Sequence record: PV764601.1
Strand: one strand, 5' to 3'
Length of the DNA stretch: 64,000 nucleotides
The notes below the pieces were generated by a model that worked only from the letters and a program-made list of their open reading frames with translations, ran no database searches and had not been told where the DNA came from. Shown in pieces: positions 13,602 through 28,223 of the stretch. Both the position numbers and the translations under genes were made by a program. Position 1 is the stretch's first letter, and every line of letters starts with the position of its first letter.

Positions 13602-14147
13602 ATGGACACCAACCAGTCTATCGGCGTCGGGGATTATCCCAATCCCCCTAAGCGCCAAGGTGTAACGCTGAGTCCCACACGGGCTCAGCAACATCCCAAC
13701 AACATCAAGTGTGCGTTCTACATCCTTCGGGGCCTGCCGGGTGAGCCCTTGGATGAGGCTGCCCAAGAAATTGCGGCAACTGCGCTGGCGAACGGGGTCA
13801 AGACCGTGGCCATCCTGTCCTCCGAGGACTTCCTCAAGGACGACAAGGGACGCTACAAGTTCAACGGGTACGAGTTGCAGAATGCGCATCGCCGCAACTA
13901 CGAGCGTGCTTGTATGCACTTCATGCTCGGGACCGAGGTGGTCATCTTGGTCAATCCGAACGTGCGCCGGTCGCACTTTTACCATTACGCCACCTCCGCT
14001 GGGTTCTACTATTACTACATCGAAGAACGGATCGTCGGCGATCCCTTCAATGTGGACGCGGAGAAGATTCGGGCCCTCCACAAGGCCAGTGCCAGCAGGG
14101 TGCCGGAGCACATCATCAGCCGCTACAGCCTTGAATTTGAGCGCTAG
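13602..14147 (+). CDS. AAA_33/polynucleotide-kinase-like protein with degenerate Walker A
   Basis: YILRGLPG(EPLD), SSEDF, YKF..LQNAH, VILVNPN and RVPEHIISRY match the family layout, but GKS/T is missing. Confidence 0.6.
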   Translation: MDTNQSIGVGDYPNPPKRQGVTLSPTRAQQHPNNIKCAFYILRGLPGEPLDEAAQEIAATALANGVKTVAILSSEDFLKDDKGRYKFNGYELQNAHRRNYERACMHFMLGTEVVILVNPNVRRSHFYHYATSAGFYYYYIEERIVGDPFNVDAEKIRALHKASASRVPEHIISRYSLEFER

Positions 14148-14155
14148 GGCGATAC

Positions 14156-14163
14156 TGTAAATA
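14156..14163 (+). promoter_or_regulatory. TGTAAATA phage promoter motif
   Basis: Intergenic octamer upstream of 14203. Confidence 0.65.
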
Positions 14164-14202
14164 AAGGATAAGCAAGTTAGCCGTCCCCGTCCGAGGTACT
14201 AA

Positions 14203-14976
14203 ATGAGCAAAACCAAGCCTGCGCCTACCAAGACCAAGAAGGCTGTGCCGGAAAAGGTCAAGACCAAGAAAAAGTTGGAAAAGGCAAAGGCCCACAAGAA
14301 GCCGGTCAAGAAGATTCCCTTTACTGTAACCATTCAGCATCCGGGAATCGTTGAAGTCTACGGTGAGGTGATTAGCCGTAGTGACGTTCACATTACCCTG
14401 CGTCGCCGCATCCATCGGTCCCGTGGCAAGTTTGAAGACGTGACCTACCCGCTGTCAGCAGTCAAGGCAGCGTTCTACATCAACGAACCCCAGGCAACCC
14501 TGTTGATTGATGACCCGAACCATGAGTATGACGTGTTTGAGGTCAGCGACTTTGAAGTCCAGGGTGGCATGTACGTACTGACTGATGAAGAAGACGGTGC
14601 AATTCATTTGTGCCATCCTAGCATCACCAGTGTTGTGCAGATTCGTAGTGCGGAAGATATTCCCGAGCGGACGTACAAGAAACGCCGCGAGGAAGAGGAT
14701 GAGGATGAAGAGGAAGAACGTCCGGTACGCAAGAAGAAGGTAGCGCCGCCTGCACCTCCTGTTGAGGAAGAGGACGATACCGAGGACGAGGAAGAAGATG
14801 ATGCGCCTCCCTTCCCTACCAAGCCAGTACAGAAGGTAGTGAAGCCCGCCAAGCCGTTGCCGCCCGTATATGACGATGACGAAGACGAAGAGGATGAAGA
14901 AGACGAAGAAGAATCCGAACAGGAAGTGGAAGTGGAAGAGCATGACGAAGATGAAGACGAATACGAAGACGAGTGA
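14203..14976 (+). CDS. hypothetical protein with Lys-rich N-terminus and Glu/Asp-rich C-terminus
   Basis: GAGG SD; low-complexity charge blocks. Confidence 0.75.
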   Translation: MSKTKPAPTKTKKAVPEKVKTKKKLEKAKAHKKPVKKIPFTVTIQHPGIVEVYGEVISRSDVHITLRRRIHRSRGKFEDVTYPLSAVKAAFYINEPQATLLIDDPNHEYDVFEVSDFEVQGGMYVLTDEEDGAIHLCHPSITSVVQIRSAEDIPERTYKKRREEEDEDEEEERPVRKKKVAPPAPPVEEEDDTEDEEEDDAPPFPTKPVQKVVKPAKPLPPVYDDDEDEEDEEDEEESEQEVEVEEHDEDEDEYEDE

Positions 14977-15027
14977 GTCTTCGCTACAGAAATCGGAGGG
15001 GCGTGTCCCCTCCACGAAGACAGGTGA

Positions 15028-15699
15028 ATGAACATGGCAAAGACCAAGGCATCAACCAAGGTAGCAACCCAGGAAGATCGTCCTCGACTCAAGAAGCGCA
15101 AGGCGGAACCCGCTGCCAAGGCACTACACGATTCTGCGATCACGGTAGCGCTGACTGAGGCGCTAGTGGACAAGCAGCTACGTAAAGCTGAGGAAGTCTC
15201 CAACGCGGATGCAGATGAGTACGAGGACGAAGGTACCGAAGTCGTTCTGCCTATCAAGCCGCGAGTTACTGGTCGGGAGATTCCTGTCGAGGTGGTCGGC
15301 ACTACGCCTTCCTTCACCTCGCAAGTCATCCCGGATGAGGACGACGTTGATGAAGTCCCCATCGAGATTGATGACTCGGCCAAGAATCTTCTCATCATGG
15401 ACAAGCCGTGGTGCTTCAAGTGCACTCACTTGGTGAGTACGGATCAGAAGCGTTCGGAGCAACTCAAGGCGTACAAGGAATGCCACTACATGAGTGGCAA
15501 CAAGAACTGCCCAGCGCGCACGACGCGACTGGTTCGGGGCCTCCCCATCGAAGAAACGGCGCTCGCCTTGTTTGAGGCAACGCGTCGGGGTGATCTTGAG
15601 CAAGACCTCAAGATTCGCCGCAAGCTCGCCACCTTTGACGAAACCATGCAGGGCCTCGTCAACCGGCGTTTCTTGGAACTCATTCGTTCCTCCAATTGA
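15028..15699 (+). CDS. hypothetical protein, possible Zn-binding C-terminal domain
   Basis: CFKC...CH...C spacing. Confidence 0.7.
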   Translation: MNMAKTKASTKVATQEDRPRLKKRKAEPAAKALHDSAITVALTEALVDKQLRKAEEVSNADADEYEDEGTEVVLPIKPRVTGREIPVEVVGTTPSFTSQVIPDEDDVDEVPIEIDDSAKNLLIMDKPWCFKCTHLVSTDQKRSEQLKAYKECHYMSGNKNCPARTTRLVRGLPIEETALALFEATRRGDLEQDLKIRRKLATFDETMQGLVNRRFLELIRSSN

Positions 15700-15725
15700 T
15701 CCAACCCAACCTCTGAGGTATCACA

Positions 15726-16166
15726 ATGTCGAAGCAGATTTATACCGCCACCCTGTACGGGCCGGCCATCCGCACCATCGAAGGCACCGTGGTCGCGGAA
15801 GACGCGAATCAGATCACCGTCCACTACAAGCGCCCGCGTTCGTCCAAGTTTGAGCAGGCTGTCATCCCGCGCACCAACGTGCAGTACGCCGCTGTTGGTG
15901 AAGACGGTTCGGTGGAAATCGCGGTCGTGAATCCGCGTGCGGAACTGGCCAACATCAAGGTGGCACCGGACACCATCGAAGTGAAGGGCAACTTCACCAC
16001 GTTCGTGGCCGAGAACGGTGATACCTACGTCGTCGCCAACACGAACGTTTCGTTCGTGGGTGAGGCCGAAGAGGCTGCCAAGAAGAAGTCGAAGGGCGGC
16101 AAGGCTGAGAAGCCGGAGAAGGGCGAGAAGAAGAAGGGCAAGAAGGGCAAGAAGAAGGTCAAGTAA
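15726..16166 (+). CDS. hypothetical protein with poly-Lys tail
   Basis: GAGG SD; ends KGEKKKGKKGKKKVK. Confidence 0.75.
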   Translation: MSKQIYTATLYGPAIRTIEGTVVAEDANQITVHYKRPRSSKFEQAVIPRTNVQYAAVGEDGSVEIAVVNPRAELANIKVAPDTIEVKGNFTTFVAENGDTYVVANTNVSFVGEAEEAAKKKSKGGKAEKPEKGEKKKGKKGKKKVK

Positions 16167-16182
16167 GTTCGGCAGTAATCTC

Positions 16183-16206
16183 GCAGGGAGGAATGATCCT
16201 CCCTGC
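16183..16206 (+). promoter_or_regulatory. Perfect 10-bp hairpin in the Ubl leader, flanked by GGCAGTAA direct repeats
   Basis: GCAGGGAGGA-ATGA-TCCTCCCTGC; GGCAGTAA at 16171 and 16214. Confidence 0.55.
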
Positions 16207-16251
16207 TACGTCAGGCAGTAACCAATCCCTGTATCTCAAGGAATCGAAACG

Positions 16252-16674
16252 ATGAACACCAATGAAAAGAACGTCCAGAACAACGAAGAAGCCACCAACG
16301 TCGCTGCCGAAGGTAGTGTCACCGTTGGAACCAATTCGGAAACCAGCACCGCGACTGATGGAAACGTCAGTGTCCCGGCAGCAGGTAGTGAAGGTCAGGC
16401 AGAAGCTACCGCAACTGCCAGTCCGACCACGGAAGTGACGGACGTTCCGGCGGAAGTGGCAGTCGCCACCTACACCGTGCAGGTCACTGGCAAGCTGACC
16501 GTCACCGGCTCCGCCGCCGCAGGCTCGACCGTGCGTTCGGCCATCAAGGCTGGCGGCGGTACTGGCTACGAGAACTTCAAGTATCAGGACGACAAGGGTA
16601 AGCCGGTTGCGCTTGACCGCAAGCTGTCGGAAAACCTCAAGCTGACCGCTATCGCCAAGGCGAGCGGCGGCTAA
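16252..16674 (+). CDS. Ubiquitin-like (beta-grasp) protein with C-terminal GG and a disordered N-terminal extension
   Basis: Ends AKASGG*; last ~68 aa follow the beta-beta-alpha-beta-beta pattern (YTVQV, GSTVRSAIKA, GKPVALDRKL, LKLTAI); lies upstream of E2- and E1-like genes. Confidence 0.75.
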   Translation: MNTNEKNVQNNEEATNVAAEGSVTVGTNSETSTATDGNVSVPAAGSEGQAEATATASPTTEVTDVPAEVAVATYTVQVTGKLTVTGSAAAGSTVRSAIKAGGGTGYENFKYQDDKGKPVALDRKLSENLKLTAIAKASGG

Positions 16675-16691
16675 AGCTACACGTACCACCT

Positions 16692-16725
16692 AGGCTCGGG
16701 CGTCGAAAGACGCTCGGGCCTTTCG
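16692..16725 (+). terminator. 13-bp GAAA-loop hairpin (attenuator or processing site) after the Ubl gene
   Basis: AGGCTCGGGCGTC-GAAA-GACGCTCGGGCCT followed by a short T run. Confidence 0.6.
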
Positions 16726-16753
16726 TACATTCAGGACTACCGAAAAGGCGACG

Positions 16754-19432
16754 ATGATGAGTAACGGAAGGTTCCCCAAAGCAGCAGCGAAGCAGAAGGT
16801 TGTTCAGTTGTGGGACTACTGCGATGATGACGAGTGCATGTGCTGCACCTCCGATTGCGACTGCGAGTGCCACGACACCGAGAACAGGTACTCTGAGAAC
16901 GTTCGGTGCCGAGATTGCTGCAAGGGTGTCTCTCTTGACGTAGCGGCCGAAGACGTGCCTTTGCTAGAAAGGCCCTACATCAAGGTGCAGGATACCGCCA
17001 CGCTTCGCGCCTGCATTCTTTTCATCGTGGACTCCCTGCGGGAGAACATGGCGACTTTGTTCCGTAATCGCCGCTCTCCTGAAATGCAGGAGATATTCTA
17101 CAAGTACCTCGGGATGGCTGTGCCAACAGTGGCTGCCTACCTCAAGGACTCCCCTGATCTATACCCAGCATTCAACCAGCCTGCTGTCATTCCTAGCTCT
17201 TGGGTGATTGCAAAGGAAGCGGCAGGCCATGAGCGCATCATGCCGAACACGGTTCGCTCTGCCTACATGTCGGGTTCTAACGCACACGAATACAATTCGG
17301 TAACTGAGTTCAGTACAGGTCACATCACGAACGACCTTGGCGTAGCCGCCCGAGCCATGACTGAGCAGTGCTTCGGTAACGACGTATTCCCCGTGCAAGA
17401 TTGCAAGTGGGATTTGATGGATTCCAACACGTTCCCTGACGTGTACCATGTGTGGGCGTTCTTCTTCATCTTGCTGTCCCAAGACCGTGCCCGCGACGAT
17501 GATCCGGACAACTACAAGTCCACCCGTGAGCAGGCGTTCGTGAATGGCAACACAGACTCCATTCCACTATACGAGATTGACTTCCGCAATCTGCAAAGCG
17601 CCTTGGCAAACGACGTGTTCAGTCGGCGGGCTGCAACAAGCCAAATTCATTTTAGCGTCGAACAGGTAATGATGAAGGAGGATCAAGTCCACATGTACGC
17701 GATGGCGTGCGTCGGACGCATGCCGCTGGTCATTCCTCTGGAGGCTATGGAGAACGAGACACAACTCATCAACTGGATGGAACGCCTCAGTTTCGACACA
17801 GGGCGCAGCCAGCGCGAGTTTGAGGCCGATCGTAAAGAACAAGAGCGTCGCATAGCAGTGCGCAGGACGTTCGGCTTCCAAGTGACAGAGCCTACACAAT
17901 ACAGGCTGTATGGACCCGCTCATATCGAGGGCATCCACTTCAATGTCACTCCTGAGACGAAAGCCAAGGCTGAATCCATGCTGGTCAACCTTGGATGGAA
18001 GGCCATCGCGGAAGTCTTCGATTCTGCGTTAGACCCATACGAGGATCGCTTCCTTGGTTACATATCGGGCTATCCTGACACACGTGACTTTCCCAGCCGC
18101 GTGATGAAGTGGGAACGCTTCCGTAAGGGCACCGCACCTACGGTGGTGCGGGTAGGTAATATCTTCCTGTCGGCTTCTCCTGCCCTCACGTATCATGCCC
18201 TGCTTAACTCGCTGACTACGGACGTTGTATCCACTCAGGATTCCTTGGTTACAGGGATTCAGATTAAGCGGGCGACGGCGCTCCTGCATGATTACGAGGA
18301 CGTGGAACGGGACTTGACGGAAACCACAAAGTCGCTGCTGGCTTTGCGTGCACGTAAGGCCGAGTTGCAGGAGCAGATTCGTCGCATCTGTTCTTTCACT
18401 GCGGAGGACGTGAACCTCGCGCTGGCAGAACTCAATAGCTACACGTGGATTGAGCATGTGGAGTTGCTGCCCTCGGGCACGGTCATCGTCCAAACGAATG
18501 ACCTGTACTACCAGCCGCCGGAAGTGTCAGGTTTTGACGATGAGGACGAAACGGATAACCGGGCGGTGCCAAGCCAGTTCTACATTGGCCAGTATCAGAT
18601 TGCACTGTCTCTAGTCAATACCGACCTCGCCATTCGCAACATTGCAGCACCGCTTGCCTACGAATTGGAATACTCTGAGCCCCGGCTGCGTATACGCATC
18701 CATCCACACATGGCTGTCCCGAGCAGCCAAGAGTCGCATGGCTCCCTGTGCTTAGGTTCGTTCCATAGCGAGTTGGAAGATCACATTTCCACCGCTTCCA
18801 ATTCGGTTGTAGGTAACTTGCGTTACAGGTTGCAGCTGCTTTACGACTTCTTGGCTACGCCGGATCGCAACGACCTGTACGTGAGGGCATGGGCCAAGAC
18901 GTATGGAGACAAGCCCGACGCTGAGTACATGGCGGTTTCTCCGTGGAAAGACCTCATCGGAAACATGGCGCCCTCCCTGTCACCAATTGGTACACGCAGG
19001 AGGTCGAAGGGTTCCCATCAAAACATGGGAGCATCAGGCTCGAAGTTGCTTGCGTTGAAGAGTCAGACTAGCAATCCGAAGTTCGACAACATCGTTGCAC
19101 AGGTGTCCAATGCGGAACTAGACTGGCACAGGATTCCTGTTACTCGGGAGACAGTGCTGAGGCTTGAAGAGTTGGTCCATGTAACCGAAGGTTATTTCAA
19201 GTTGAACAACATCAGCAACGAAAGTTGCCCCGGCTGTAACATGCTGCAACACAAGTGCGTATGTTGCAAACATGAGCCGAGCGAAGAATGTGGCTGTTGT
19301 GGTACGTGCAAGCGTACTCGGTGCAGTTGCTGCTCGGACTGTGAGTCCTCTCCCTGCAAGTGTTGCAACCGCTGCTTGTGCACTCCAGAAGATTGCGAGT
19401 GCGACGATGATATTGAGGATGATGAACTTTAA
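16754..19432 (+). CDS. Large multidomain protein with coiled coil, prokaryotic E2/UBC-like domain and Cys-rich termini
   Basis: HPH (aa 650-652)...GSLCLG (Cys666)...LYDFLATPDRNDLY is an E2-like signature; CxCC repeats at both ends. Confidence 0.65.
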   Translation: MMSNGRFPKAAAKQKVVQLWDYCDDDECMCCTSDCDCECHDTENRYSENVRCRDCCKGVSLDVAAEDVPLLERPYIKVQDTATLRACILFIVDSLRENMATLFRNRRSPEMQEIFYKYLGMAVPTVAAYLKDSPDLYPAFNQPAVIPSSWVIAKEAAGHERIMPNTVRSAYMSGSNAHEYNSVTEFSTGHITNDLGVAARAMTEQCFGNDVFPVQDCKWDLMDSNTFPDVYHVWAFFFILLSQDRARDDDPDNYKSTREQAFVNGNTDSIPLYEIDFRNLQSALANDVFSRRAATSQIHFSVEQVMMKEDQVHMYAMACVGRMPLVIPLEAMENETQLINWMERLSFDTGRSQREFEADRKEQERRIAVRRTFGFQVTEPTQYRLYGPAHIEGIHFNVTPETKAKAESMLVNLGWKAIAEVFDSALDPYEDRFLGYISGYPDTRDFPSRVMKWERFRKGTAPTVVRVGNIFLSASPALTYHALLNSLTTDVVSTQDSLVTGIQIKRATALLHDYEDVERDLTETTKSLLALRARKAELQEQIRRICSFTAEDVNLALAELNSYTWIEHVELLPSGTVIVQTNDLYYQPPEVSGFDDEDETDNRAVPSQFYIGQYQIALSLVNTDLAIRNIAAPLAYELEYSEPRLRIRIHPHMAVPSSQESHGSLCLGSFHSELEDHISTASNSVVGNLRYRLQLLYDFLATPDRNDLYVRAWAKTYGDKPDAEYMAVSPWKDLIGNMAPSLSPIGTRRRSKGSHQNMGASGSKLLALKSQTSNPKFDNIVAQVSNAELDWHRIPVTRETVLRLEELVHVTEGYFKLNNISNESCPGCNMLQHKCVCCKHEPSEECGCCGTCKRTRCSCCSDCESSPCKCCNRCLCTPEDCECDDDIEDDEL

Positions 19433-19444
19433 GGAGCACTAACG

Positions 19445-20128
19445 ATGGATCAAATTCGATTGACCGGTATCTTCGACCTGAGCAAGAGTAAGGCCACTGA
19501 GCGCACGCCTGCGGTGGTTGTCGGGGCAGGGGCCTTGGGCAGCGCGGTAGCGTTGCAGTTGTCAAAGATCGGTGTACCGTTCGTTGTCTATGATGATGAC
19601 GTGGTGGAATCCCACAACCTGCCGAACCAATGCCTGTACGGTCCCGATGACGTGGGGACGAACAAGGCTGTTGCCTTGGTGGATCGCCTGCGTCAAGTTT
19701 CGGACACGCGAGTGGGCGCGTGTCCTCGCCGCCTCAATAAGCCCAGGTTTGAGGCCACTCCATATGTGTTCGTATGCGTGGACAACATGGCATCGCGCCG
19801 TGCCTTCGCGGAGAACTACTTGCCGTGTGAGGGTGGTGCGTTTCTGGATGGACGCATGGGAGCCCGGGATGCAATCTCGTTCCTGCTTGATCGCAGCAAG
19901 GAATGGCAACGCACTAATTACATTGGTGGCCTGTTCGATGACGACGACGCCAATGTAGAACGCGCGGCTTGTGGGGCAACCCTCAGTGTCGGAGCTACGG
20001 CGCAGATTGTCGCGTCACAGATGATCTGGCAGTTCATGAATTTCGTCATGGGCCGCCCGACACCTAACACGGTGGTGACAAGCGTGGGTGAAGAATGGGG
20101 AATGCACAGCGTAACATGGCAGGAGTAA
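19445..20128 (+). CDS. ThiF/MoeB/E1-family adenylyltransferase
   Basis: VVGAGALGS, DDDVVESHNLPNQ, GTNKA, CVDN, DGRMG and candidate catalytic Cys176 (ERAACGA). Confidence 0.9.
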   Translation: MDQIRLTGIFDLSKSKATERTPAVVVGAGALGSAVALQLSKIGVPFVVYDDDVVESHNLPNQCLYGPDDVGTNKAVALVDRLRQVSDTRVGACPRRLNKPRFEATPYVFVCVDNMASRRAFAENYLPCEGGAFLDGRMGARDAISFLLDRSKEWQRTNYIGGLFDDDDANVERAACGATLSVGATAQIVASQMIWQFMNFVMGRPTPNTVVTSVGEEWGMHSVTWQE

Positions 20129-20307
20129 CATGGGAGATTGTCACCGAACAGGTGGCGCCGCACAACGGCAAGAGCTACGTCATCAAGAAGCGTGACGTAG
20201 ACGGCCGAACAGAGTACCAGCTGTGGGTCAACAAGCTGCTGATGGAGCAGACGTTCGACACCGACAAGCTGCGTGAACGCATTGAGCACACTGCACAACT
20301 ACGATAA
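20116..20307 (+). CDS. hypothetical protein
   Basis: Small ORF overlapping the E1 stop. Confidence 0.5.
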   Translation: MAGVTWEIVTEQVAPHNGKSYVIKKRDVDGRTEYQLWVNKLLMEQTFDTDKLRERIEHTAQLR

Positions 20308-20317
20308 AGGAATTGAA

Positions 20318-21004
20318 ATGCTCGTTACTCCGAAGCTCATCACCTATACCGCCGAATGGTTGCATGGTCTGCGTGACCAGTACCCCATCGGTGCCAATCC
20401 CCACAACGAAAGTTTCCATGAGCATCTGGATCAGTTCCAGAAGCTGGAGGATGGTTCCTACCGTGCCCCATTCGTGTACGAGCACGCAACGCTGCCGGGT
20501 GTGTTCACGGGCGACCTCAACTTCGATCATGAAATCAACCGCTCCAAGCAGGACGGCAAGCGCAAGTTCGATCTTGACTATCCAGAGTTCCCTGAGCACA
20601 ACGCGGGCATCTACGACGACTTGGGCGAGGATGGCGAACCGAAGAAGCGCTACCTCAACTGCTATGGCGTAGTGGACACCCCGGAACAGCTGTTTGAACT
20701 GTTCCCCATTATCGACGCTCTGGAGAATCGGTACTTCTGCGTCAGCATGGTTGAAATGCGCAGGGACGAGCAGGAGCCGAATGGCGGTTGGCGCTGGCAC
20801 AAGTGGGGCGCGTACCTTGGTACCCGTGAACCGCAGTTCGAGTATCTCTATGACGAGACGGCGGAGAACCGTTCGGATGGCAAGGCCATCGACGCGGTGT
20901 GGGTGTACCATATCTACGAACTTGTGGAAGGGGATATGGTGCATCCCGTAATCGTGGAACGGCAGAAGTGGCTGCGTCGCCAGCAGGGGAACGCAGCGGA
21001 GTAA
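20318..21004 (+). CDS. conserved-looking phage hypothetical protein
   Basis: AAGGA SD; YGVVD and GGWRWHKWGAYLG motifs. Confidence 0.7.
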   Translation: MLVTPKLITYTAEWLHGLRDQYPIGANPHNESFHEHLDQFQKLEDGSYRAPFVYEHATLPGVFTGDLNFDHEINRSKQDGKRKFDLDYPEFPEHNAGIYDDLGEDGEPKKRYLNCYGVVDTPEQLFELFPIIDALENRYFCVSMVEMRRDEQEPNGGWRWHKWGAYLGTREPQFEYLYDETAENRSDGKAIDAVWVYHIYELVEGDMVHPVIVERQKWLRRQQGNAAE

Positions 21005-21013
21005 GACCGGAAG

Positions 21014-21041
21014 AGCCCTGTGAGAAATCGCAGGGCTTTCT
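21014..21041 (+). terminator. Rho-independent terminator
   Basis: AGCCCTGTGA-GAAA-TCGCAGGGCT-TTCT. Confidence 0.7.
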
Positions 21042-21057
21042 GCACATTGAGGCATCC

Positions 21058-21065
21058 TGTAAATA
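21058..21065 (+). promoter_or_regulatory. TGTAAATA phage promoter motif
   Basis: Between terminator and topoisomerase start. Confidence 0.7.
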
Positions 21066-21097
21066 TAGGGTATGACGTTCAACCAAGAGGAACCGAC

Positions 21098-22990
21098 GTG
21101 GCGAAAGCCAGCTATTCAGAGAAGCAAGTAAAAGTCCTGATTGGCTTGAAAGCCGTTCAGGCCAAAGCCGGTATGTATATCGGCCTTACAGATTCAACGG
21201 GTATCGGCACCATCGGCCGCGAGCCGCTGGACAACATCGTTGACGAATTCAAGGCAGGCCGTGGCGCTTCTGTTACCCTGTTGATCGACACGAAGGCGTG
21301 GAAATTCTGGACCATTGACTCGGCAGGTGGTATGCCAGTCAAGCCGCACACGCTGGAAATCGAAGGCCGCAAGGTCAAGGAGTCGGCACTCAAGTCGCTG
21401 GTCAGTCGCCTGCATGCAGGCGCAAAGTTTGACAAGGGTGCTTACGAGAACGCGGGTGGTACGCACGGCGTTGGCCTCAAGGCTACCAATGCGCTGTCGA
21501 AGCACTTTGAGGTTCACACCTTCCGAGACAAGGTGTGGTGGCACACTCAGTACGCCGATGGCGTGGAGAAGAAGCCGGTCAAGAAGGCGACTGCCCCCAA
21601 GTTGCCGTTCGGGGTCAAGGTCAAGAAGGGCACGGCGATCCACTGGATTCCGGACCTCAAGTATTTCGACAAGGGCTCGAAGATTCCGATCGACTACTTC
21701 GAGCAGTGGTGTGAACTCGCTGCTTACCTCAACGCCGGGCTGGAAGTCACGCTCATCGTTGATGGCAAGAAGAAGCAGTGGAAGTTCAAGGATGGCGTCA
21801 AGGACTTCCTCGGTGCGCAGTGCAAGAAGCTCAAGGCTACTGTCACTGGCAAGCCGTTCGTCCTGACCGAGAAGGGGTTCCCTGCTGAGATTGCGCTGGC
21901 GTTCACAGATGCCGAAGGCGACAACATCGAGGCATACACCAACTCGATCCACAACAAGAATGGCGGTCTGCATGTAGACATTCTGAAACAGTGTCTCTAC
22001 AATGCCATCGTCAAGTACGCCAACAGCAAGCAGTCCTTCCGAAAGGACGACGTGCTCGAAGGTGCAGTAGGCATCATCAACGCCAAACTCGATGCTCCCC
22101 GATTCAGCAGTCAGGACAAGGCACAGCTGGTTGACGGCCGGGTCAACGACATGCTGCCCACGCCGTTGCAGAAGAAGCTGGATGAGTTCTTCGCACAAAA
22201 CAAGACTCTGGCCAAGACGCTGTGCGAGAAGGCAGCGGCTGTGCGTGGAGCTAAGGCGGAATTCACTGCCTCAAAGAAGGCCATCGCTGCGCTGAACTCG
22301 GGCAAGAAGAAGGGCAACAACATGCCTGCCAAGTTCGTCAGCGCCAACTGCGCTCCGCATAAGCGTGAGACGTTCTTGGTGGAAGGTGACTCGGCAGGTG
22401 GTACGGCGAAGAAGGCCCGAGACAAAACGCATCAGGAAATCTTGCCGCTACGAGGCAAGATTCTGAACGTCATGAAGCAGAAGGACATTAACGCGGCCTT
22501 CAACAGTGACGAAGTGTTGTTCATCCTGCGTGCGCTGGGCTTCGATCCGACCAAGAAGAATCCGCTTGACCACCTGCGTACTGGCAAGATGATTATGCTG
22601 ACCGACGCGGACGTTGACGGTCGCCACATCGAAACGCTTGTGATCGCCCTGCTGGTCAAGTACGTGCCGGGTGTGTTTGAGCGTGGCCTGATCTACACGG
22701 TGGACAGTCCGGAGTACACTTACTACGACGCCAAGACCAGGACCTATTACATGGCGAAGTCGCGTAAGGAACTGTGGGCCAAGATGCCGAAGGGTGCAGA
22801 CCGCAACAAGGTCAACCACCTCAAGGGGTGGGGTGAGGCAGCTCCAGAAATGCTGCGTGAGGCAGCGTTCGATGCCACCACCCGTAAGCTCAAGCGCATC
22901 ACGCTCAAGGATGCAAAGTCGCTGTCCAAGTTCACGCTGCTGATGGCCGACGACGTGACGGCACGCAAGAAGCTGCTGGGGATTCCGTGA
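21098..22990 (+). CDS. Type IIA DNA topoisomerase subunit B (GyrB/ParE-like)
   Basis: GHKL motifs (EPLDNIVDE, DSAGGMP, GGTHGVG); TOPRIM EGDSA, PLRGKILNV, TDADVDG. Confidence 0.95.
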   Translation: MAKASYSEKQVKVLIGLKAVQAKAGMYIGLTDSTGIGTIGREPLDNIVDEFKAGRGASVTLLIDTKAWKFWTIDSAGGMPVKPHTLEIEGRKVKESALKSLVSRLHAGAKFDKGAYENAGGTHGVGLKATNALSKHFEVHTFRDKVWWHTQYADGVEKKPVKKATAPKLPFGVKVKKGTAIHWIPDLKYFDKGSKIPIDYFEQWCELAAYLNAGLEVTLIVDGKKKQWKFKDGVKDFLGAQCKKLKATVTGKPFVLTEKGFPAEIALAFTDAEGDNIEAYTNSIHNKNGGLHVDILKQCLYNAIVKYANSKQSFRKDDVLEGAVGIINAKLDAPRFSSQDKAQLVDGRVNDMLPTPLQKKLDEFFAQNKTLAKTLCEKAAAVRGAKAEFTASKKAIAALNSGKKKGNNMPAKFVSANCAPHKRETFLVEGDSAGGTAKKARDKTHQEILPLRGKILNVMKQKDINAAFNSDEVLFILRALGFDPTKKNPLDHLRTGKMIMLTDADVDGRHIETLVIALLVKYVPGVFERGLIYTVDSPEYTYYDAKTRTYYMAKSRKELWAKMPKGADRNKVNHLKGWGEAAPEMLREAAFDATTRKLKRITLKDAKSLSKFTLLMADDVTARKKLLGIP

Positions 22991-23193
22991 TGGACATTCA
23001 AGCACTGCTGGCAGGCAAGACGATTGCCAAGGCGGAAGAGTTTCGGGAGGACGGCGAGCTAAAAGCTATCCAACTGACCTTCACTGATGGCAGCGAGTTC
23101 CGAGTCAACGGGGCTTGCATGTATCACGAGACGGAGGGATACCCATTCGGGTATCTCGCCATGAGCCATTTGGGAGCACGTAACGATGGCTAA
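22987..23193 (+). CDS. small hypothetical protein between the topoisomerase subunits
   Basis: Overlaps both neighbours. Confidence 0.55.
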   Translation: MMDIQALLAGKTIAKAEEFREDGELKAIQLTFTDGSEFRVNGACMYHETEGYPFGYLAMSHLGARNDG

Positions 23194-24700
23194 GGTAGCC
23201 AAGAAAGTGAAAGGCAAGAAAGTGAAGTCGGGTAAGGTCAAGACCAAGGCTTCGGGCAACAACGTGGTAGTCGATATTGACTTGGCCACTCATGGCGACG
23301 AGTGCATGTTCACCTATGGCCGTGCGGTCATTGAGGATCGTGCCTTCCCTGACTACCGCGATGGCCTGCTGCCTGTGCAGCGCCGCATCCTCTACGCGGC
23401 GTACAAGATGGGCATGGCTCCGAGTGGTGGCACCAAGAAGTCTGCTCGACTCGTGGGTGACGTGATCGGTAAGTACCATCCGCACGGTGACACCGCAGCC
23501 TATGGTTCTGTCGTGCAGATGGTGAACGCTTCGGAACCGTACTTCATTGGCCAAGGCAACTTTGGCTCGATGACTGACGAAGCGGCGGCGATGCGATACA
23601 CCGAGTTGAAGTTGAGTAAGTATGGCTACAACGTCTTCTTCTCGGCCGACCACCTTGAAGTTTCGGACATGGTGCCGAACTATGATGGTAAGGATCAAGA
23701 GCCAATGATCCTCCCGTCGCTGCTGCCGAACCTGCTGTTGAATGGTAGTTCGGGCAACATCGCGGTAGGTACGGCGGGTTGGGTTCCTGCCTTTGGCATG
23801 AAGGGCGTCATCGAACTGACGAAGAAGGCACTTCGGAAGCAGCCTATCGACGTGAAGGATTGCAGCAAGGCACTCAAGATCAACTACGCCCGACACGGCT
23901 CCACTCCCTGCACCCTGAACAAGGGCAGCAACGAGCAGAAGGAAATCCGGAAGGAGTGGCGTCAGCTGCTGTCCACTGGTGCTGGCCGTGCCATCGTCAC
24001 TTCGGACTACACCATCGACGCCAAGAATCGGACGATCAACATCACGTCCATTCCTCCGCAGACTGACGTGGAGAAGCTGATCGGGCGAGTCGCTGAGGAT
24101 GATCGTGTCAAGTCCTGTACGGATGAGACGAGTCGGAAAGACCCCTTCCTGATTCAAGTGGTTCTCAAGCAGGACATTGGTGTTCGGATGGTTGAGGCCA
24201 AGGCGCTTGAAGTGATCGAGAAGCACTTCTCCAAGCGATGCAGCTTCCGAATCAACGCCATCGAAAAGAGCTTCGACTACGAGACCGAAACGCCGTCAGC
24301 TGAACTGTTGCAGACCAGCGTGCTGGACTTCTTCAAGAAGTGGACCAAGTGGCGCATCGACCTTGAGGTCAAGGCCCTGAATTATCGGAAGGGCAAGACG
24401 CAAGAGCAGTTGGCGTTGCAGGAACTGATGCTGCTGGCATGCAAGAACATCGACTTGATCGTCAAGGCGCTGAAAGCGAAGAACACCGAAGAGGTGTTGA
24501 TGAAGGGCCTCAAGATCACGGCCGAGCAGGTGGACACGATCCTGAGTCGTCAGATTCGCAGCTTGAAGGCTCTGGAAGCCGAGAAGCTTGTGGAGAAGAT
24601 CAAGGAGACGAAGGCATTCCTGACTCAGCTGGATAAGTGGCTCAAGAAGCCAGCCGACAAGATCGTGGCTGACATTGATACAATGGTGGCCTCAATCTGA
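23186..24700 (+). CDS. Type IIA DNA topoisomerase subunit A (GyrA/ParC-like, no C-terminal pinwheel)
   Basis: RAFPDYRDGLLPVQRRIL, GKYHPHGD and AAAMRYTE (catalytic Tyr). Confidence 0.95.
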   Translation: MAKVAKKVKGKKVKSGKVKTKASGNNVVVDIDLATHGDECMFTYGRAVIEDRAFPDYRDGLLPVQRRILYAAYKMGMAPSGGTKKSARLVGDVIGKYHPHGDTAAYGSVVQMVNASEPYFIGQGNFGSMTDEAAAMRYTELKLSKYGYNVFFSADHLEVSDMVPNYDGKDQEPMILPSLLPNLLLNGSSGNIAVGTAGWVPAFGMKGVIELTKKALRKQPIDVKDCSKALKINYARHGSTPCTLNKGSNEQKEIRKEWRQLLSTGAGRAIVTSDYTIDAKNRTINITSIPPQTDVEKLIGRVAEDDRVKSCTDETSRKDPFLIQVVLKQDIGVRMVEAKALEVIEKHFSKRCSFRINAIEKSFDYETETPSAELLQTSVLDFFKKWTKWRIDLEVKALNYRKGKTQEQLALQELMLLACKNIDLIVKALKAKNTEEVLMKGLKITAEQVDTILSRQIRSLKALEAEKLVEKIKETKAFLTQLDKWLKKPADKIVADIDTMVASI

Positions 24701-26403: not shown

Positions 26404-26673
26404 ATGAGCATCGAACAAAGTCCCCTTTACCCCACCCTGCATAAGCGGGTGACCGACGCGGTAGTGGAGTTCCTCGGCGTCAAGCCGGAAGAGGTTCTCC
26501 CCACCGCCAGCCTTGTCTCTGACCTCGGGGCAGATTCGCTCGACTTGATCGAACTGCTGATGGAACTGGAGGAAACCTTCCAGATCGAAGTGCCGGACGA
26601 GGACGCTGAGAAGTGGGTGACCATCGGCGACGTTGAAGCGTACCTGTTCCAGCGAAAGTACGCTGGCGAGTAA
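26404..26673 (+). CDS. acpP: Acyl carrier protein
   Basis: [31 protein letters not shown], with the canonical DSL phosphopantetheinyl Ser. Confidence 0.9.
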
Positions 26674-26676
26674 TCC

Positions 26677-26684: not shown

Positions 26685-26816
26685 AGGGATATGCAGCGGC
26701 GAGCTAGGCCGGACGGCGCTGCACACTTTAGCGAATTCGGGCATGGACGAGTTCGCCGAACGGCCAACCATGTACGTACTACCCAACCATTCATCCTTAT
26801 AAGGAAACTGTTTCAC

Positions 26817-28223
26817 ATGGCTACCACCAAGAAGACCACCAAGACCGCCGCCACCAAGACCAAGGCTGCTGCCAAGGGCAAATCGGAAAAGACCACCGTG
26901 AAGAAGACCGCTGCGAAGAAGGCTCCGGCCACCAAGGCCACCAAGGCTGCGCCGAAGGCTGCCGCCAAGAAGCCGGCCGTGAAGAAGACTGCTGCGAAGA
27001 CCACCAAGGCTGCTCCGGCCAAGAAGGCTGCCGCCAAGACCACCAAGGCTGCGCCGAAGGCTGCTGCGAAGAAGCCGGTCGCCAAGAAGACCGCAGCCAA
27101 GGCTGCTCCGAAGAAGGACGCCAAGGCCACCACCAAGAAGACGGCCAAGGTCGTGAGCAAGAAGTCGAGCGCCAAGGCTCCAGCCAAGGGTAAGGGCGGC
27201 AAGGGTAAGCCGGCTGCGAAGGGTAAGGGCAAGTCCGCTCCGGCCAAGGCCGCTGCCAAGAAGGACACCAAGGCCGCTGCTGGCCGCGCCGTCTTCAATG
27301 GCCTGCAAATCGCGGACATCCAGAAGGAAGCCAAGAAGCTGACCGACAAGCAGGCCAAGGCCATCGCTGTCGCTCATAACAAGTGGGCCTCGGAAATCTA
27401 CGAGGACGGCGACATTGACGTGAAGAAGCACAGCAACGGTGCTGCCATCGCCAAGCTGCTGCCGACGCTGGATCCGATCAACAGCAAGGATGGCCTCAAG
27501 GGCTTCCTGACCTATCTGGCCGACGAGGGCATCTACACCTTTGGCGGTGACGCCGAGGAAGAGAAGCCGGCCAAGGGTGGCAAGAAGGCCGCTGCCAAGA
27601 AGCCGGCCAAGGGTGGCAAGAAGTCGGTGAAGGGTGACGACGAAGACGAAGAGTACGAAGACGAGGAAGAGGAAGAGGAAGACGACGAGGAAGAGGAAGA
27701 GGAAGACGACGAGGAAGAGGAAGAAGAAGAAGAAGAGGAAGAAGAGAAGCCGGCCAAGGGTGGCAAGAAGGCAGCCAAGGCTGCGCCGAAGGCCGCTGCC
27801 AAGGGTAAGGGCAAGAAGTCGGAACTGTCTCTGGAGTCGCTGCAAGCGCAGATCGACGAAATCAAGGAGCAGATCGCGGAGCTGATGAACGCCGAGGAAG
27901 AGGACGAGGAAGACGAGGAGGAAGAGAAGCCGGCCAAGGGTGGCAAGAAGGCTGCTGGCAAGAAGTCCAAGAAGGATGAGGAAGAGGAAGAAGACGAAGA
28001 AGAAGAGGAAGAGGAAGAAGACGAGGAAGAGGAAGAAGACGAAGAAGAGGAAGAGGAAGAAGAAGAGGAAGAAGAGGAAGAAGAGGAAGAAGACGAAGAA
28101 GAGGAAGAAGACGAAGAAGAGGAAGAGGAAGAGGAAGAAGACGAGGAAGAAGACGAGGAAGAAGACGAGGAAGAAGACGAGGAAGAGGAAGACGAAGAAG
28201 ATGAAGAGGACGACGAAGAGTAA
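26817..28223 (+). CDS. Histone-H1-like Lys/Ala-rich protein with long Glu/Asp tracts
   Basis: N-terminal AAKK/KAAP repeats, recurring EEKPAKGGKK units, about 80-aa pure E/D C-terminus; AAGGA SD. Confidence 0.8.
   Translation: MATTKKTTKTAATKTKAAAKGKSEKTTVKKTAAKKAPATKATKAAPKAAAKKPAVKKTAAKTTKAAPAKKAAAKTTKAAPKAAAKKPVAKKTAAKAAPKKDAKATTKKTAKVVSKKSSAKAPAKGKGGKGKPAAKGKGKSAPAKAAAKKDTKAAAGRAVFNGLQIADIQKEAKKLTDKQAKAIAVAHNKWASEIYEDGDIDVKKHSNGAAIAKLLPTLDPINSKDGLKGFLTYLADEGIYTFGGDAEEEKPAKGGKKAAAKKPAKGGKKSVKGDDEDEEYEDEEEEEEDDEEEEEEDDEEEEEEEEEEEEKPAKGGKKAAKAAPKAAAKGKGKKSELSLESLQAQIDEIKEQIAELMNAEEEDEEDEEEEKPAKGGKKAAGKKSKKDEEEEEDEEEEEEEEDEEEEEDEEEEEEEEEEEEEEEEEDEEEEEDEEEEEEEEEDEEEDEEEDEEEDEEEEDEEDEEDDEE

Follow-up and report, generated by a model that had tools for sequence, protein, structure and literature searches.

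Whether a bacterial virus can carry a ubiquitin-like conjugation cascade of its own is the question raised by three adjacent genes of Xanthomonas phage PhiXhv-12. They lie in a 64,000-nucleotide stretch of sequence record PV764601.1 that was analysed as a whole (the window, base 1 of which is base 124001 of the record), and their open reading frames are termed here ORF1, ORF2 and ORF3 (Table 1). An earlier interpretation made from the letters alone, the sequence-only reading, had taken them for a ubiquitin-like protein (Ubl) ending in Gly-Gly, a giant protein resembling an E2 (conjugating) enzyme and an E1 (activating) enzyme of the ThiF family. Our analysis suggests that the cassette is probably a phage-encoded Ubl conjugation cascade, in which an unusual modifier is paired with an E2-like family that is both new and very rare. 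Working Ubl conjugation in prokaryotes is a recent discovery; in the type II cyclic oligonucleotide-based antiphage signalling system (CBASS) and in Bil it serves antiphage immunity, Bub is suspected of doing likewise, and the conjugation systems of all three have been described as bacterial host defences (PMC11601596, PMC11601603). No bacteriophage cassette of Ubl, E2 and E1 is reported in the open-access papers and bioRxiv preprints searched, where the viral precedent consists only of E1-like genes in Asgard-archaeal viruses.

The three-gene cassette of PhiXhv-12

PhiXhv-12 is a virulent jumbo phage of the myovirus type that was isolated on Xanthomonas hortorum pv. vitians; together with its relatives it is under development as a biocontrol phage (PMC13340338), a use that makes knowledge of its accessory systems useful. 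The genome comprises 227,648 bp, and bases 14000-24000 of the window match PV764601.1 with 100% identity. Over the same bases four relatives (PhiXhv-15, PhiXhv-16, Ep026 and Ep032) are about 98-99% identical. The three co-oriented frames described in the sequence-only reading were verified by script with their coordinates, lengths and all quoted motifs. They belong to a co-directional block, with a NAD-dependent DNA ligase gene on one side of the cassette and the genes for both type II topoisomerase subunits on the other, and are separated by gaps of 79 bases (ORF1-ORF2) and 12 bases (ORF2-ORF3). When the cassette was scanned for promoters and terminators, no site between the genes exceeded shuffled expectation. 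In GenBank, the coding sequences of ORF1 and ORF2 are named "hypothetical protein" and that of ORF3 "thiamine biosynthesis protein".

ORF3 is an E1/ThiF-family protein

Sequence comparison supports well the assignment of ORF3 to the E1/ThiF family, in agreement with the sequence-only reading. ORF3 matches the Pfam ThiF profile PF00899 (75.4 bits, cut-off 28.1; 4.8e-21), its residues 10-209 aligning to positions 10-210 of the 238 in the profile. The segments GAGALG (27-32) and DDDVVESHNL, which follows the pattern DxDxVExxNL, and the candidate thioester-forming Cys176 are all in place, and 11 aligned E1s with 28-68% identity (A10) show no variation in the columns G27, G29, G32, D50, D52, E55, N58, Q62, K74, D113 and R118. 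Among proteins in the PDB, ThiF gives the best sequence match (1e-7), followed by MccB, Cap2, MoeB and Uba1. PADLOC reports the E1-E2 (Cap2) model at 3.6e-12 and, weakly, BilD at 7.8e-6, both limited to the Rossmann segment; Cap2 is also matched in the PDB (7tsq/7to3, 1e-5) and, with 51 bits against a cut-off of 320, in NCBIfam (cap2_3). All NCBIfam scores of ORF3 lie under the respective equivalog cut-offs, namely 54.6 of 275 bits for ThiF, 52.2 of 144.75 for PRTRC-ThiF and 26-36 of 266-450 for MoeB, and no rhodanese domain was found in ORF3. Judged by its sequence, ORF3 is neither ThiF nor MoeB proper. The routine name "thiamine biosynthesis protein" for phage E1s probably misleads across many phage genomes.

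ORF1 is predicted to be a tailed ubiquitin-like protein

ORF1 ends in Gly139-Gly140 immediately before the stop codon. The sequence-only reading had assigned a beta-grasp pattern closing in SGG-stop to its last ~68 residues, and modelling bears this out. An AlphaFold2 model of aa 68-140, built on a very shallow alignment of three sequences (predicted local distance difference test, pLDDT, 73; predicted template modelling score, pTM, 0.58), shows the order strand-strand-helix-strand-strand with a floppy C-terminus. Foldseek relates this model with a probability of 1.00, template modelling (TM) scores of 0.6-0.77 and root-mean-square deviations of 2.4-3.5 A to UBX, MoaD (6jc0), the Bil Ubl (8tyx_A/8tyz_B), SUMO and ubiquitin; the E-values are only about 3e-3, as is expected because the domain has 70 residues. 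Gly-Lys, Gly, Arg, Leu and Gly-Gly columns are invariant in the Ubl alignment (A8). ORF1 has no sequence match in Pfam, NCBIfam or the PDB, the Prok_Ub, ThiS, MoaD and ubiquitin families included, and hhalign detected no relation to PRTRC-C (Prok_Ub). The structural model and its fold matches make a Ubl-type beta-grasp ending in Gly-Gly a well-supported assignment for the C-terminal domain.

The beta-grasp domain is preceded by a tail of unusual composition. Residues 1-72 consist to 97% of T, A, E, P, N, S, G, V, Q and D, carry a net charge of -10 and are nearly devoid of hydrophobic residues. A Ubl with such an acidic tail suggests a new type of modification outcome.

The triad is conserved in phage-like lineages

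ORF2 belongs to a family that is hard to find. A word-indexed search, run with the single sequence and with a nine-sequence profile, returned only ORF2 itself; tblastn against GenBank phages found five near-identical phages only; IMG/VR, GTDB genomes and JGI metagenomes yielded no relatives; and an exhaustive HMMER search counted 5 representatives among 1.84 billion proteins. Only E1 relatives gave access to related triads, through the genes next to them on the same contigs. One of the large proteins found in this way, the 947-aa ORF2 homologue of lineage L002 (L002:5144-7987), is filed in a 90%-identity cluster represented by a 53-aa protein, which is probably why the large protein searches had missed it.

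A survey of gene neighbourhoods, suggested in the sequence-only reading, placed the triad in six further lineages on phage-like metagenomic contigs from anonymous assemblies, with E1s 33-68% identical to ORF3 and large proteins about 17-32% identical to ORF2 (Table 1). Such repeated occurrence of the trio takes the cassette pattern beyond chance. The contigs are considered phage-like because genes adjacent to the triads match phage families (a QueE-like radical SAM enzyme, primase, SbcD and a Cas4-like nuclease). Flanking genes are shared with L002 only, so that the triad itself appears as the conserved unit. Its internal order varies in one respect: the Ubl gene lies either upstream of the ORF2-like gene or downstream of the E1 gene. 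The ORF2-like gene adjoins the E1 gene in the related loci, with a JAB gene in between in L011.

Every lineage examined has kept the Gly-Gly or Gly C-terminus of the Ubl, the Pro651-His652 and Cys666 of ORF2 and the Cys176 of the E1. The Ubl ends in GG-stop in the window, L002, L004, L006 and L009, in SG-stop in L007 and in GGC in L011. An acidic tail is present in 6 of 7 Ubls (56-128 aa, 97-99% T/A/E/P/N/S/G/V/Q/D, net charge -10 to -18), the tail sequences being unalignable; the L011 Ubl is the exception, its tail being of different composition and helical instead of polyanionic and disordered.

Lineage L011 (L011:4991-12080) encodes the Ubl ending in GGC, a protein with the ORF2 core, a JAB protein and the E1, followed by a ParB-like gene. 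The JAB protein matches Pfam Prok-JAB (2e-6, 28 bits, cut-off 25) and possesses a canonical JAMM motif; compared by hhalign with the ORF2 family, it gave no match. An extra residue after Gly-Gly combined with a JAB peptidase is the textbook layout, in which the peptidase both matures and removes the Ubl. L011 has the layout of the classical Ubl, E2, JAB and E1 set.

The conserved core of ORF2

The ORF2 family shares a core in which a beta-meander, an acidic insert (aa ~587-608 in ORF2), an HPH loop, an invariant Cys and three to four helices follow one another. Gly612, Ile616, Pro651, His652, Cys666 and Trp731 are invariant in alignments A2, A4 and A6, which cover 17-38% identity, and Arg628, Asn629 and Gly668 are so in subsets (Gly668 in A2 and A4). 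All motifs that the sequence-only reading had singled out are in place, namely HPH at 650-652, Cys666 within GSLCLG (663-668), LYDFL at 696 and PDRNDLY at 703. Pro651, His652 and Cys666 are found in 9/9 sequences of the family, the third motif position being His instead of Asn, and the Cys stands in the context Gly-x-hydrophobic-Cys-hydrophobic-Gly. Counted from the His of Pro-His, the Cys follows at a spacing of 8 residues in L004, L006 and L007, of 14 in ORF2 and of 9-14 in the remaining members. This Pro-His-to-Cys pattern is similar to that of UBC enzymes, in whose signature HPN precedes the Cys.

The 396-aa protein of L011 consists of the coiled coil, the ORF2 core (hhalign against the family, E=3e-5) and a Cys/His-rich tail, and of nothing else. 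Because it lacks them, the N-terminal region of about 500 residues and the two Cys clusters of ORF2 can be regarded as add-ons. ORF2 contains 36 Cys, 30 of which lie in the two terminal clusters as CC, CxC and CxxC runs. The N-terminal cluster occurs in the L002 and L004 homologues and not in the others, and the Cys/His-rich tail that follows the core in L011 is of a different kind. Comparable clusters are located elsewhere along the protein in L002, L004 and L011, and further homologues have none. The terminal clusters may be metal-binding or E3 (ligase)-like modules. Identification of the N-terminal region as a PRTRC-F alpha-hel2 domain was ruled out by profile comparison.

Does ORF2 contain an E2 domain?

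The AlphaFold2 model of ORF2 aa 500-760 is of low overall confidence (pLDDT 63.8, pTM 0.55) and rests on a very shallow alignment of five sequences, with four lineages left out. It places a long helix and a shorter helix before a beta-meander broken by the disordered acidic insert, followed by the HPH loop, the Cys and three to four helices, with pLDDT values of 72-90 for the helices and most strands. When the model was compared with the PDB by Foldseek and matches were judged at chain level, 16 of the 30 top-ranked chains proved to be E2 or RWD proteins (best E 0.055, target-normalised TM 0.3-0.46); these comprise UbcH7, UbcH5c, Cdc34, Ubc8, UbcH8, Ube2W, fungal and trypanosome E2s and one RWD domain. 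A comparison with viral predicted structures (BFVD) gave nothing meaningful. When a profile built from four PRTRC-B (Prok-E2_D) proteins was compared by hhalign with that of the ORF2 core, the single best match, a weak one, joined the catalytic-Cys motif of Prok-E2_D to the candidate motif of ORF2 (score 22.6, P=0.018), a score reached by 2/60 column-shuffled controls.

ORF2 has no PHROG or PADLOC match, and profile searches of Pfam, the PDB and NCBIfam did not link it to JAB either. Weak Pfam matches to Knl1_RWD_C and Spc7 were dismissed, since they lie on the coiled coil, and a DivIC match is likewise of the coiled-coil type.

The sequence-only reading of ORF2 as E2-like thus fares unevenly: the invariant Pro-His...Cys, the topology of the model and the E2-enriched Foldseek list speak for it, but no significant sequence or structure match backs it. 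An E2/UBC domain in the ORF2 core is only moderately supported, and the label "E2-like" is plausible, not proven. Such a family would widen the known sequence space of E2-like enzymes.

Proposed conjugation cascade

We propose that the three genes constitute a self-contained Ubl conjugation cascade of a lytic jumbo phage, a reading that we hold to be rather likely, in which the modifier would travel from the E1 via Cys176 and Cys666 to lysines of target proteins. At first, ORF3, as a minimal E1 of the homodimer-type ThiF family, would bind ATP and adenylate the exposed Gly-Gly of ORF1; no processing protease is needed for this step, because ORF1 is made in its mature form. The acyl group would then be transferred to Cys176 of the E1 and from there to Cys666 of ORF2, which would reside in a very divergent UBC-like core carried by a coiled coil. 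Substrate choice may fall to the large parts of ORF2 that are not catalytic, i.e. the N-terminal region of about 500 aa and the Cys-rich ends of the metal-binding type, as in E2/E3 hybrids. The product would be a target protein bearing the beta-grasp together with its disordered, strongly acidic tail of 72 aa. What the data show is the order of the genes, the conservation of this order, the membership of ORF3 in the E1 family, the predicted beta-grasp, the Gly-Gly terminus and the invariant Cys residues; we infer from there an E2 fold for ORF2, the relay by thioesters, the conjugation to lysine and the identity of the targets. Targets could be host proteins, DNA-binding and defence proteins among them, or phage replication proteins, the latter being candidates because of the neighbourhood of the cassette; the sequence-only reading had suggested that host defence or virion proteins may be tagged. 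If the proposal is correct, the covalent tagging of proteins is a tool of bacterial viruses too, just as ubiquitin is exploited by viruses of eukaryotes.

Several observations weigh against such a cascade. The ORF2 model is poorest at the proposed active site (pLDDT 44-59), and its Foldseek comparison with the PDB yielded nothing at E<=0.001. Neither ORF2 nor seven further members of its family gave a UBC, RWD or Prok-E2 match in Pfam, the PDB or NCBIfam at E up to 10, and the hhalign match between the ORF2 core and Prok-E2_D is short and has a probability of only 2.5%. In ORF3, Asn61, which precedes the conserved Gln, replaces the usual Arg (Arg in ThiF), and CxxC zinc sites are lacking, the protein having five Cys in total. 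Finally, the sequence-only reading had suggested a look for a JAB peptidase elsewhere in the genome. A hidden Markov model of eight phage JABs, run against all stop-to-stop segments of the PhiXhv-12 genome, found no JAB, and no other deconjugating enzyme was detected in the phage. The absence of a JAB match is consistent with a Ubl made in its mature form. Matches of a loose JAMM-motif regular expression in the genome were judged to be due to chance.

Alternative explanations

The main rival is conjugation driven by the E1 without a true E2, as in the archaeal SAMP/UbaA system, with ORF2 serving as the main substrate, as a scaffold or as an E3-like adaptor and with its Cys/His motif being metal-binding or otherwise catalytic. 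Such an arrangement would account for the lack of a significant E2 match and for a large ORF2 that contains a coiled coil and is rich in Cys clusters of a kind common in metal-binding proteins, and the invariant Cys176 means that the E1 could itself hold the thioester. The Pro-His...Cys spacing, the helix-meander-Cys-helices topology and the E2-dominated Foldseek list are, however, what a divergent E2 would be expected to show. It is moreover the core Cys that is conserved in the ORF2 family, whereas the Cys clusters are not, and the related layouts of PRTRC and L011 have an E2-type gene in the place of ORF2. We consider E1-only conjugation unlikely.

A second explanation makes ORF1 a sulfur carrier of the ThiS, MoaD or TtuB kind, adenylated by ORF3 and then thiocarboxylated, with ORF2 as relay or acceptor for a phage nucleic-acid or cofactor modification. 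It draws on the GenBank name of ORF3, on ThiF and MoeB as the closest solved structures to ORF3, on MoaD among the top fold matches of ORF1, and on the nucleobase-modification genes of PhiXhv-12, which encode FolE, a QueE-like and a QueD-like protein; a QueE-like gene also lies near the L004 triad. These three PhiXhv-12 genes are located outside the window (PV764601.1 8706-9386, 11391-12290 and 211088-211546 for FolE, "GTP 3',8-cyclase" and QueD-like, respectively). The annotation "GTP 3',8-cyclase" might be read as molybdopterin synthesis, a reading we rejected: the radical SAM protein matches QueE best and belongs with FolE and QueD. Together they suggest a 7-deazaguanine pathway and not molybdopterin synthesis, and the 7-deazaguanine pathway requires, to our knowledge, no sulfur carrier. 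The sequence-only reading had argued against sulfur-carrier cofactor synthesis from the lack of ThiG or MoaE genes nearby, and the argument holds genome-wide: ThiG, ThiH, MoaE, rhodanese, desulfurase and PP-loop thiolase are not annotated in the 227-kb genome. ORF3 itself falls far short of the score required of a ThiF equivalog and lacks a rhodanese domain, such carriers do not have polyanionic tails of 56-128 aa, L011 contains a JAB, and the plasmid E1s closest to ORF3 are encoded in cassettes of the Ub/E2/JAB kind. A sulfur-carrier function is therefore disfavoured, and we rate it as quite improbable.

Adenylation of the MccB/PaaA type without conjugation, in which the C-terminus of ORF1 would be modified in the manner of a small molecule or cyclised and ORF2 would be an unrelated enzyme such as a Cys/His hydrolase, is very improbable, since the MccB and PaaA matches of ORF3 in the PDB (3e-6 to 2e-4) are confined to the Rossmann segment aa 20-90, the substrate is a folded beta-grasp with Gly-Gly and not a short peptide, the conserved ORF2 partner fits poorly, and the 8-residue His-to-Cys spacing differs from that of known Cys/His hydrolase dyads.

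Comparison with known systems

The nearest plasmid relatives of ORF3 are ThiF proteins of the PRTRC system (27-35% identity) on Cupriavidus, Ralstonia and Burkholderia megaplasmids. On pHG1 the PRTRC order is ParB, E, C (Prok_Ub), F (alpha-hel2), B (Prok-E2_D), A (DUF2016 and Prok-JAB) and ThiF, a layout that corresponds to the "6d" class of Ub, JAB, E1 and E2 operons (Iyer, Burroughs and Aravind 2006, PMC1779556). PRTRC, found on conjugative plasmids and integrative and conjugative elements, and the phage cassette follow one logic, in which a mobile element encodes a minimal E1 together with a small Ubl ending in Gly and an E2-type protein that bears a Cys, and the L011 relative of the cassette shares the JAB and a ParB-like gene as well. 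Unlike PRTRC, the phage has no Pfam match to Prok_Ub, alpha-hel2, Prok-E2_D, DUF2016 or JAB, and only the E1 is related; in addition, ORF2 has 892 aa, among them a coiled coil and an extensive additional region, and the phage Ubl carries a long acidic tail.

Among the defence systems, Bil (BilABCD) resembles the cassette in having separate Ubl, E2 and E1 proteins and in its Ubl, two structures of which are matched by the ORF1 model, and Bil and Bub Ubls can also possess low-complexity N-terminal tails (PMC11601603). Bil is, however, host-encoded and antiphage (PMC11601603), it includes the JAB deubiquitinase BilC, the like of which was not detected in the phage, and PADLOC finds no BilA or BilB match for ORF1 or ORF2. 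Bub (formerly 6E/DUF6527) is a divergent bacterial trio of E1, E2 and Ubl whose Ubl architectures vary (PMC11601596, PMC11601603). The phage trio is divergent in the same sense but retains an invariant Cys in both the E1 and ORF2, and no peptidase was detected in it. In a comparison with type II CBASS Cap2 and with 6A-MBL systems, the Rossmann segment of ORF3 matches the Cap2 models, yet Cap2 is an E2-E1 fusion that conjugates the CD-NTase and not a beta-grasp Ubl, while ORF3 stands alone with 227 aa; no CD-NTase, effector or Cap3 gene was found near the cassette. The ThiS-ThiF and MoaD-MoeB pairs likewise consist of a minimal E1 of about 230-250 aa and a small beta-grasp protein ending in Gly-Gly, but the phage has neither their annotated partner enzymes nor CxxC sites, and instead has an acidic-tailed Ubl and a giant Cys protein as the conserved partner. 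UBE2O and BIRC6 are giant eukaryotic E2/E3 hybrids: a UBC-type core forms one part of a very large protein, and the remaining regions choose the substrates, so that no separate E3 is involved. By analogy of architecture alone they may serve as a working model for ORF2, with which they share no detectable sequence relationship.

GenBank phages with relatives of the E1 (27-30% identity to ORF3) are crAss-like Steigviridae and Flavobacterium phages of the genus Fipvunavirus. In these phages (L013-L018, e.g. L013:1274-4570) a block of a protein X, a JAMM/JAB protein and a ThiF-like E1 lies between primase and uracil-DNA glycosylase genes and is annotated with "metalloprotease domain" and "thiamine biosynthesis protein" only. 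X has 370-434 aa and the motif YMHSH...C-x-G-S, that is, a conserved His-x-His...Cys-x-Gly-Ser, and the JAMM protein has about 400 aa. As in PhiXhv-12, a phage-borne E1 relative is part of a replication module; the block differs in possessing a JAB, which was not detected in PhiXhv-12, and in that no Gly-ended Ubl was identified in it. Homology of X to ORF2 is not significant (hhalign E 0.14), and X was retained merely as a lead. The block may be another phage system of the Ubl type. By sequence, the cassette is a member of a small phage-borne family, with an E1 nearest to those of plasmid PRTRC systems and of the crAss-like JAB-E1 blocks.

A further-reaching proposal is one that we offer tentatively and regard as doubtful in its entirety. 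The phage might run a complete Ubl cascade whose carrier represents a hitherto unnoticed, extraordinarily divergent family of giant E2/E3 hybrids. In the course of infection it would covalently attach an acidic, possibly nucleic-acid-mimicking tail to host proteins, such as DNA-binding defence or nucleoid proteins, or to replication proteins of the phage, and the X, JAB and ThiF blocks known from crAss-like and Flavobacterium phages would be remotely related systems. In that event, a bacterial antiviral tool (conjugation of the Bil, Bub and CBASS type) would have been turned into a viral weapon, and protein tagging would be a widespread, overlooked phage strategy.

Features of the cassette and its surroundings

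Table 1. Coordinates of the cassette and its features in the window, and composition of the related triads (aa, amino acids; AF2, AlphaFold2)
Feature	Position in window	Strand	Remarks
ORF1	16252..16674	+	140 aa, C-terminus AKASGG-stop; Ubl made without precursor
Ubl N-terminal tail, aa 1-72	16252..16467	+	predicted disordered, polyanionic; composition script
Ubl beta-grasp domain, aa 73-140, flexible C-terminal GG	16468..16671	+	AF2 model, Foldseek, alignment A8
ORF2	16754..19432	+	892 aa; giant protein that may be an E2 or an E2/E3 hybrid
ORF2 N-terminal Cys-rich cluster, aa 23-56	16820..16921	+	10 Cys within first 60 aa
ORF2 predicted coiled coil and alpha-1 helices, aa 501-562	18254..18439	+	AF2 helices 2-48 and 51-63 of model, pLDDT 74-90; precede core
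ORF2 conserved core, aa 566-736, candidate UBC-like domain	18449..18961	+	alignments A2, A4, A6; AF2
ORF2 HPH(650-652)...Gly-Ser-Leu-Cys666, candidate active site	18701..18751	+	residue script
ORF2 C-terminal Cys-rich cluster, aa 822-892	19217..19429	+	20 Cys, acidic end
ORF3	19445..20128	+	227 aa; minimal E1/ThiF-family adenylyltransferase
E1 nucleotide-binding loop GAGALG, aa 27-32	19523..19540	+	invariant in 11 relatives
E1 Cys176, candidate thioester-forming Cys	19970..19972	+	invariant column, 11 E1s, 28-68% identity
L002			Ubl 162 aa, large protein 947 aa, E1 228 aa; syntenic with ligase and topoisomerase genes
L004			Ubl 124 aa, large protein 771 aa, E1 220 aa
L006			Ubl 142 aa, large protein 695 aa, E1 221 aa
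L007			Ubl 196 aa, large protein 598 aa, E1 243 aa; Ubl downstream of E1
L009			Ubl 154 aa, large protein 570 aa, E1 236 aa; Ubl downstream of E1
L011			Ubl 158 aa, large protein 396 aa, E1 218 aa; 417-aa JAMM/JAB protein before E1

Among the relatives of PhiXhv-12, "Xanthomonas phage Ep026" and "Erwinia phage Ep032" score alike against bases 14000-24000 of the window (97.9%, 17294 bits each) despite the differing host genera in their names. Just 3' of the cassette, a gene at 20273-21004 (+) encodes a 243-aa protein that matches two PHROG families lacking known function (1e-22 and 5e-17) and that, among the triad lineages, is shared only with L002, the closest relative. Further downstream, the hypothetical protein encoded at 26691-28223 (+) has an N-terminal half that is rich in Lys, Ala and Thr and resembles histone H1; very long poly-Glu/Asp runs come after it, and this composition accounts for the AT skew of 0.357 found at 26-28 kb. 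Directly 5' of its gene lies one called acyl carrier protein (about 26405-26674). Outside the window, the annotation places a leucyl/phenylalanyl-tRNA--protein transferase gene at PV764601.1 115739-116572. This transferase is an enzyme that creates N-degrons, and its gene would be a second hint that PhiXhv-12 manipulates the fate of proteins.

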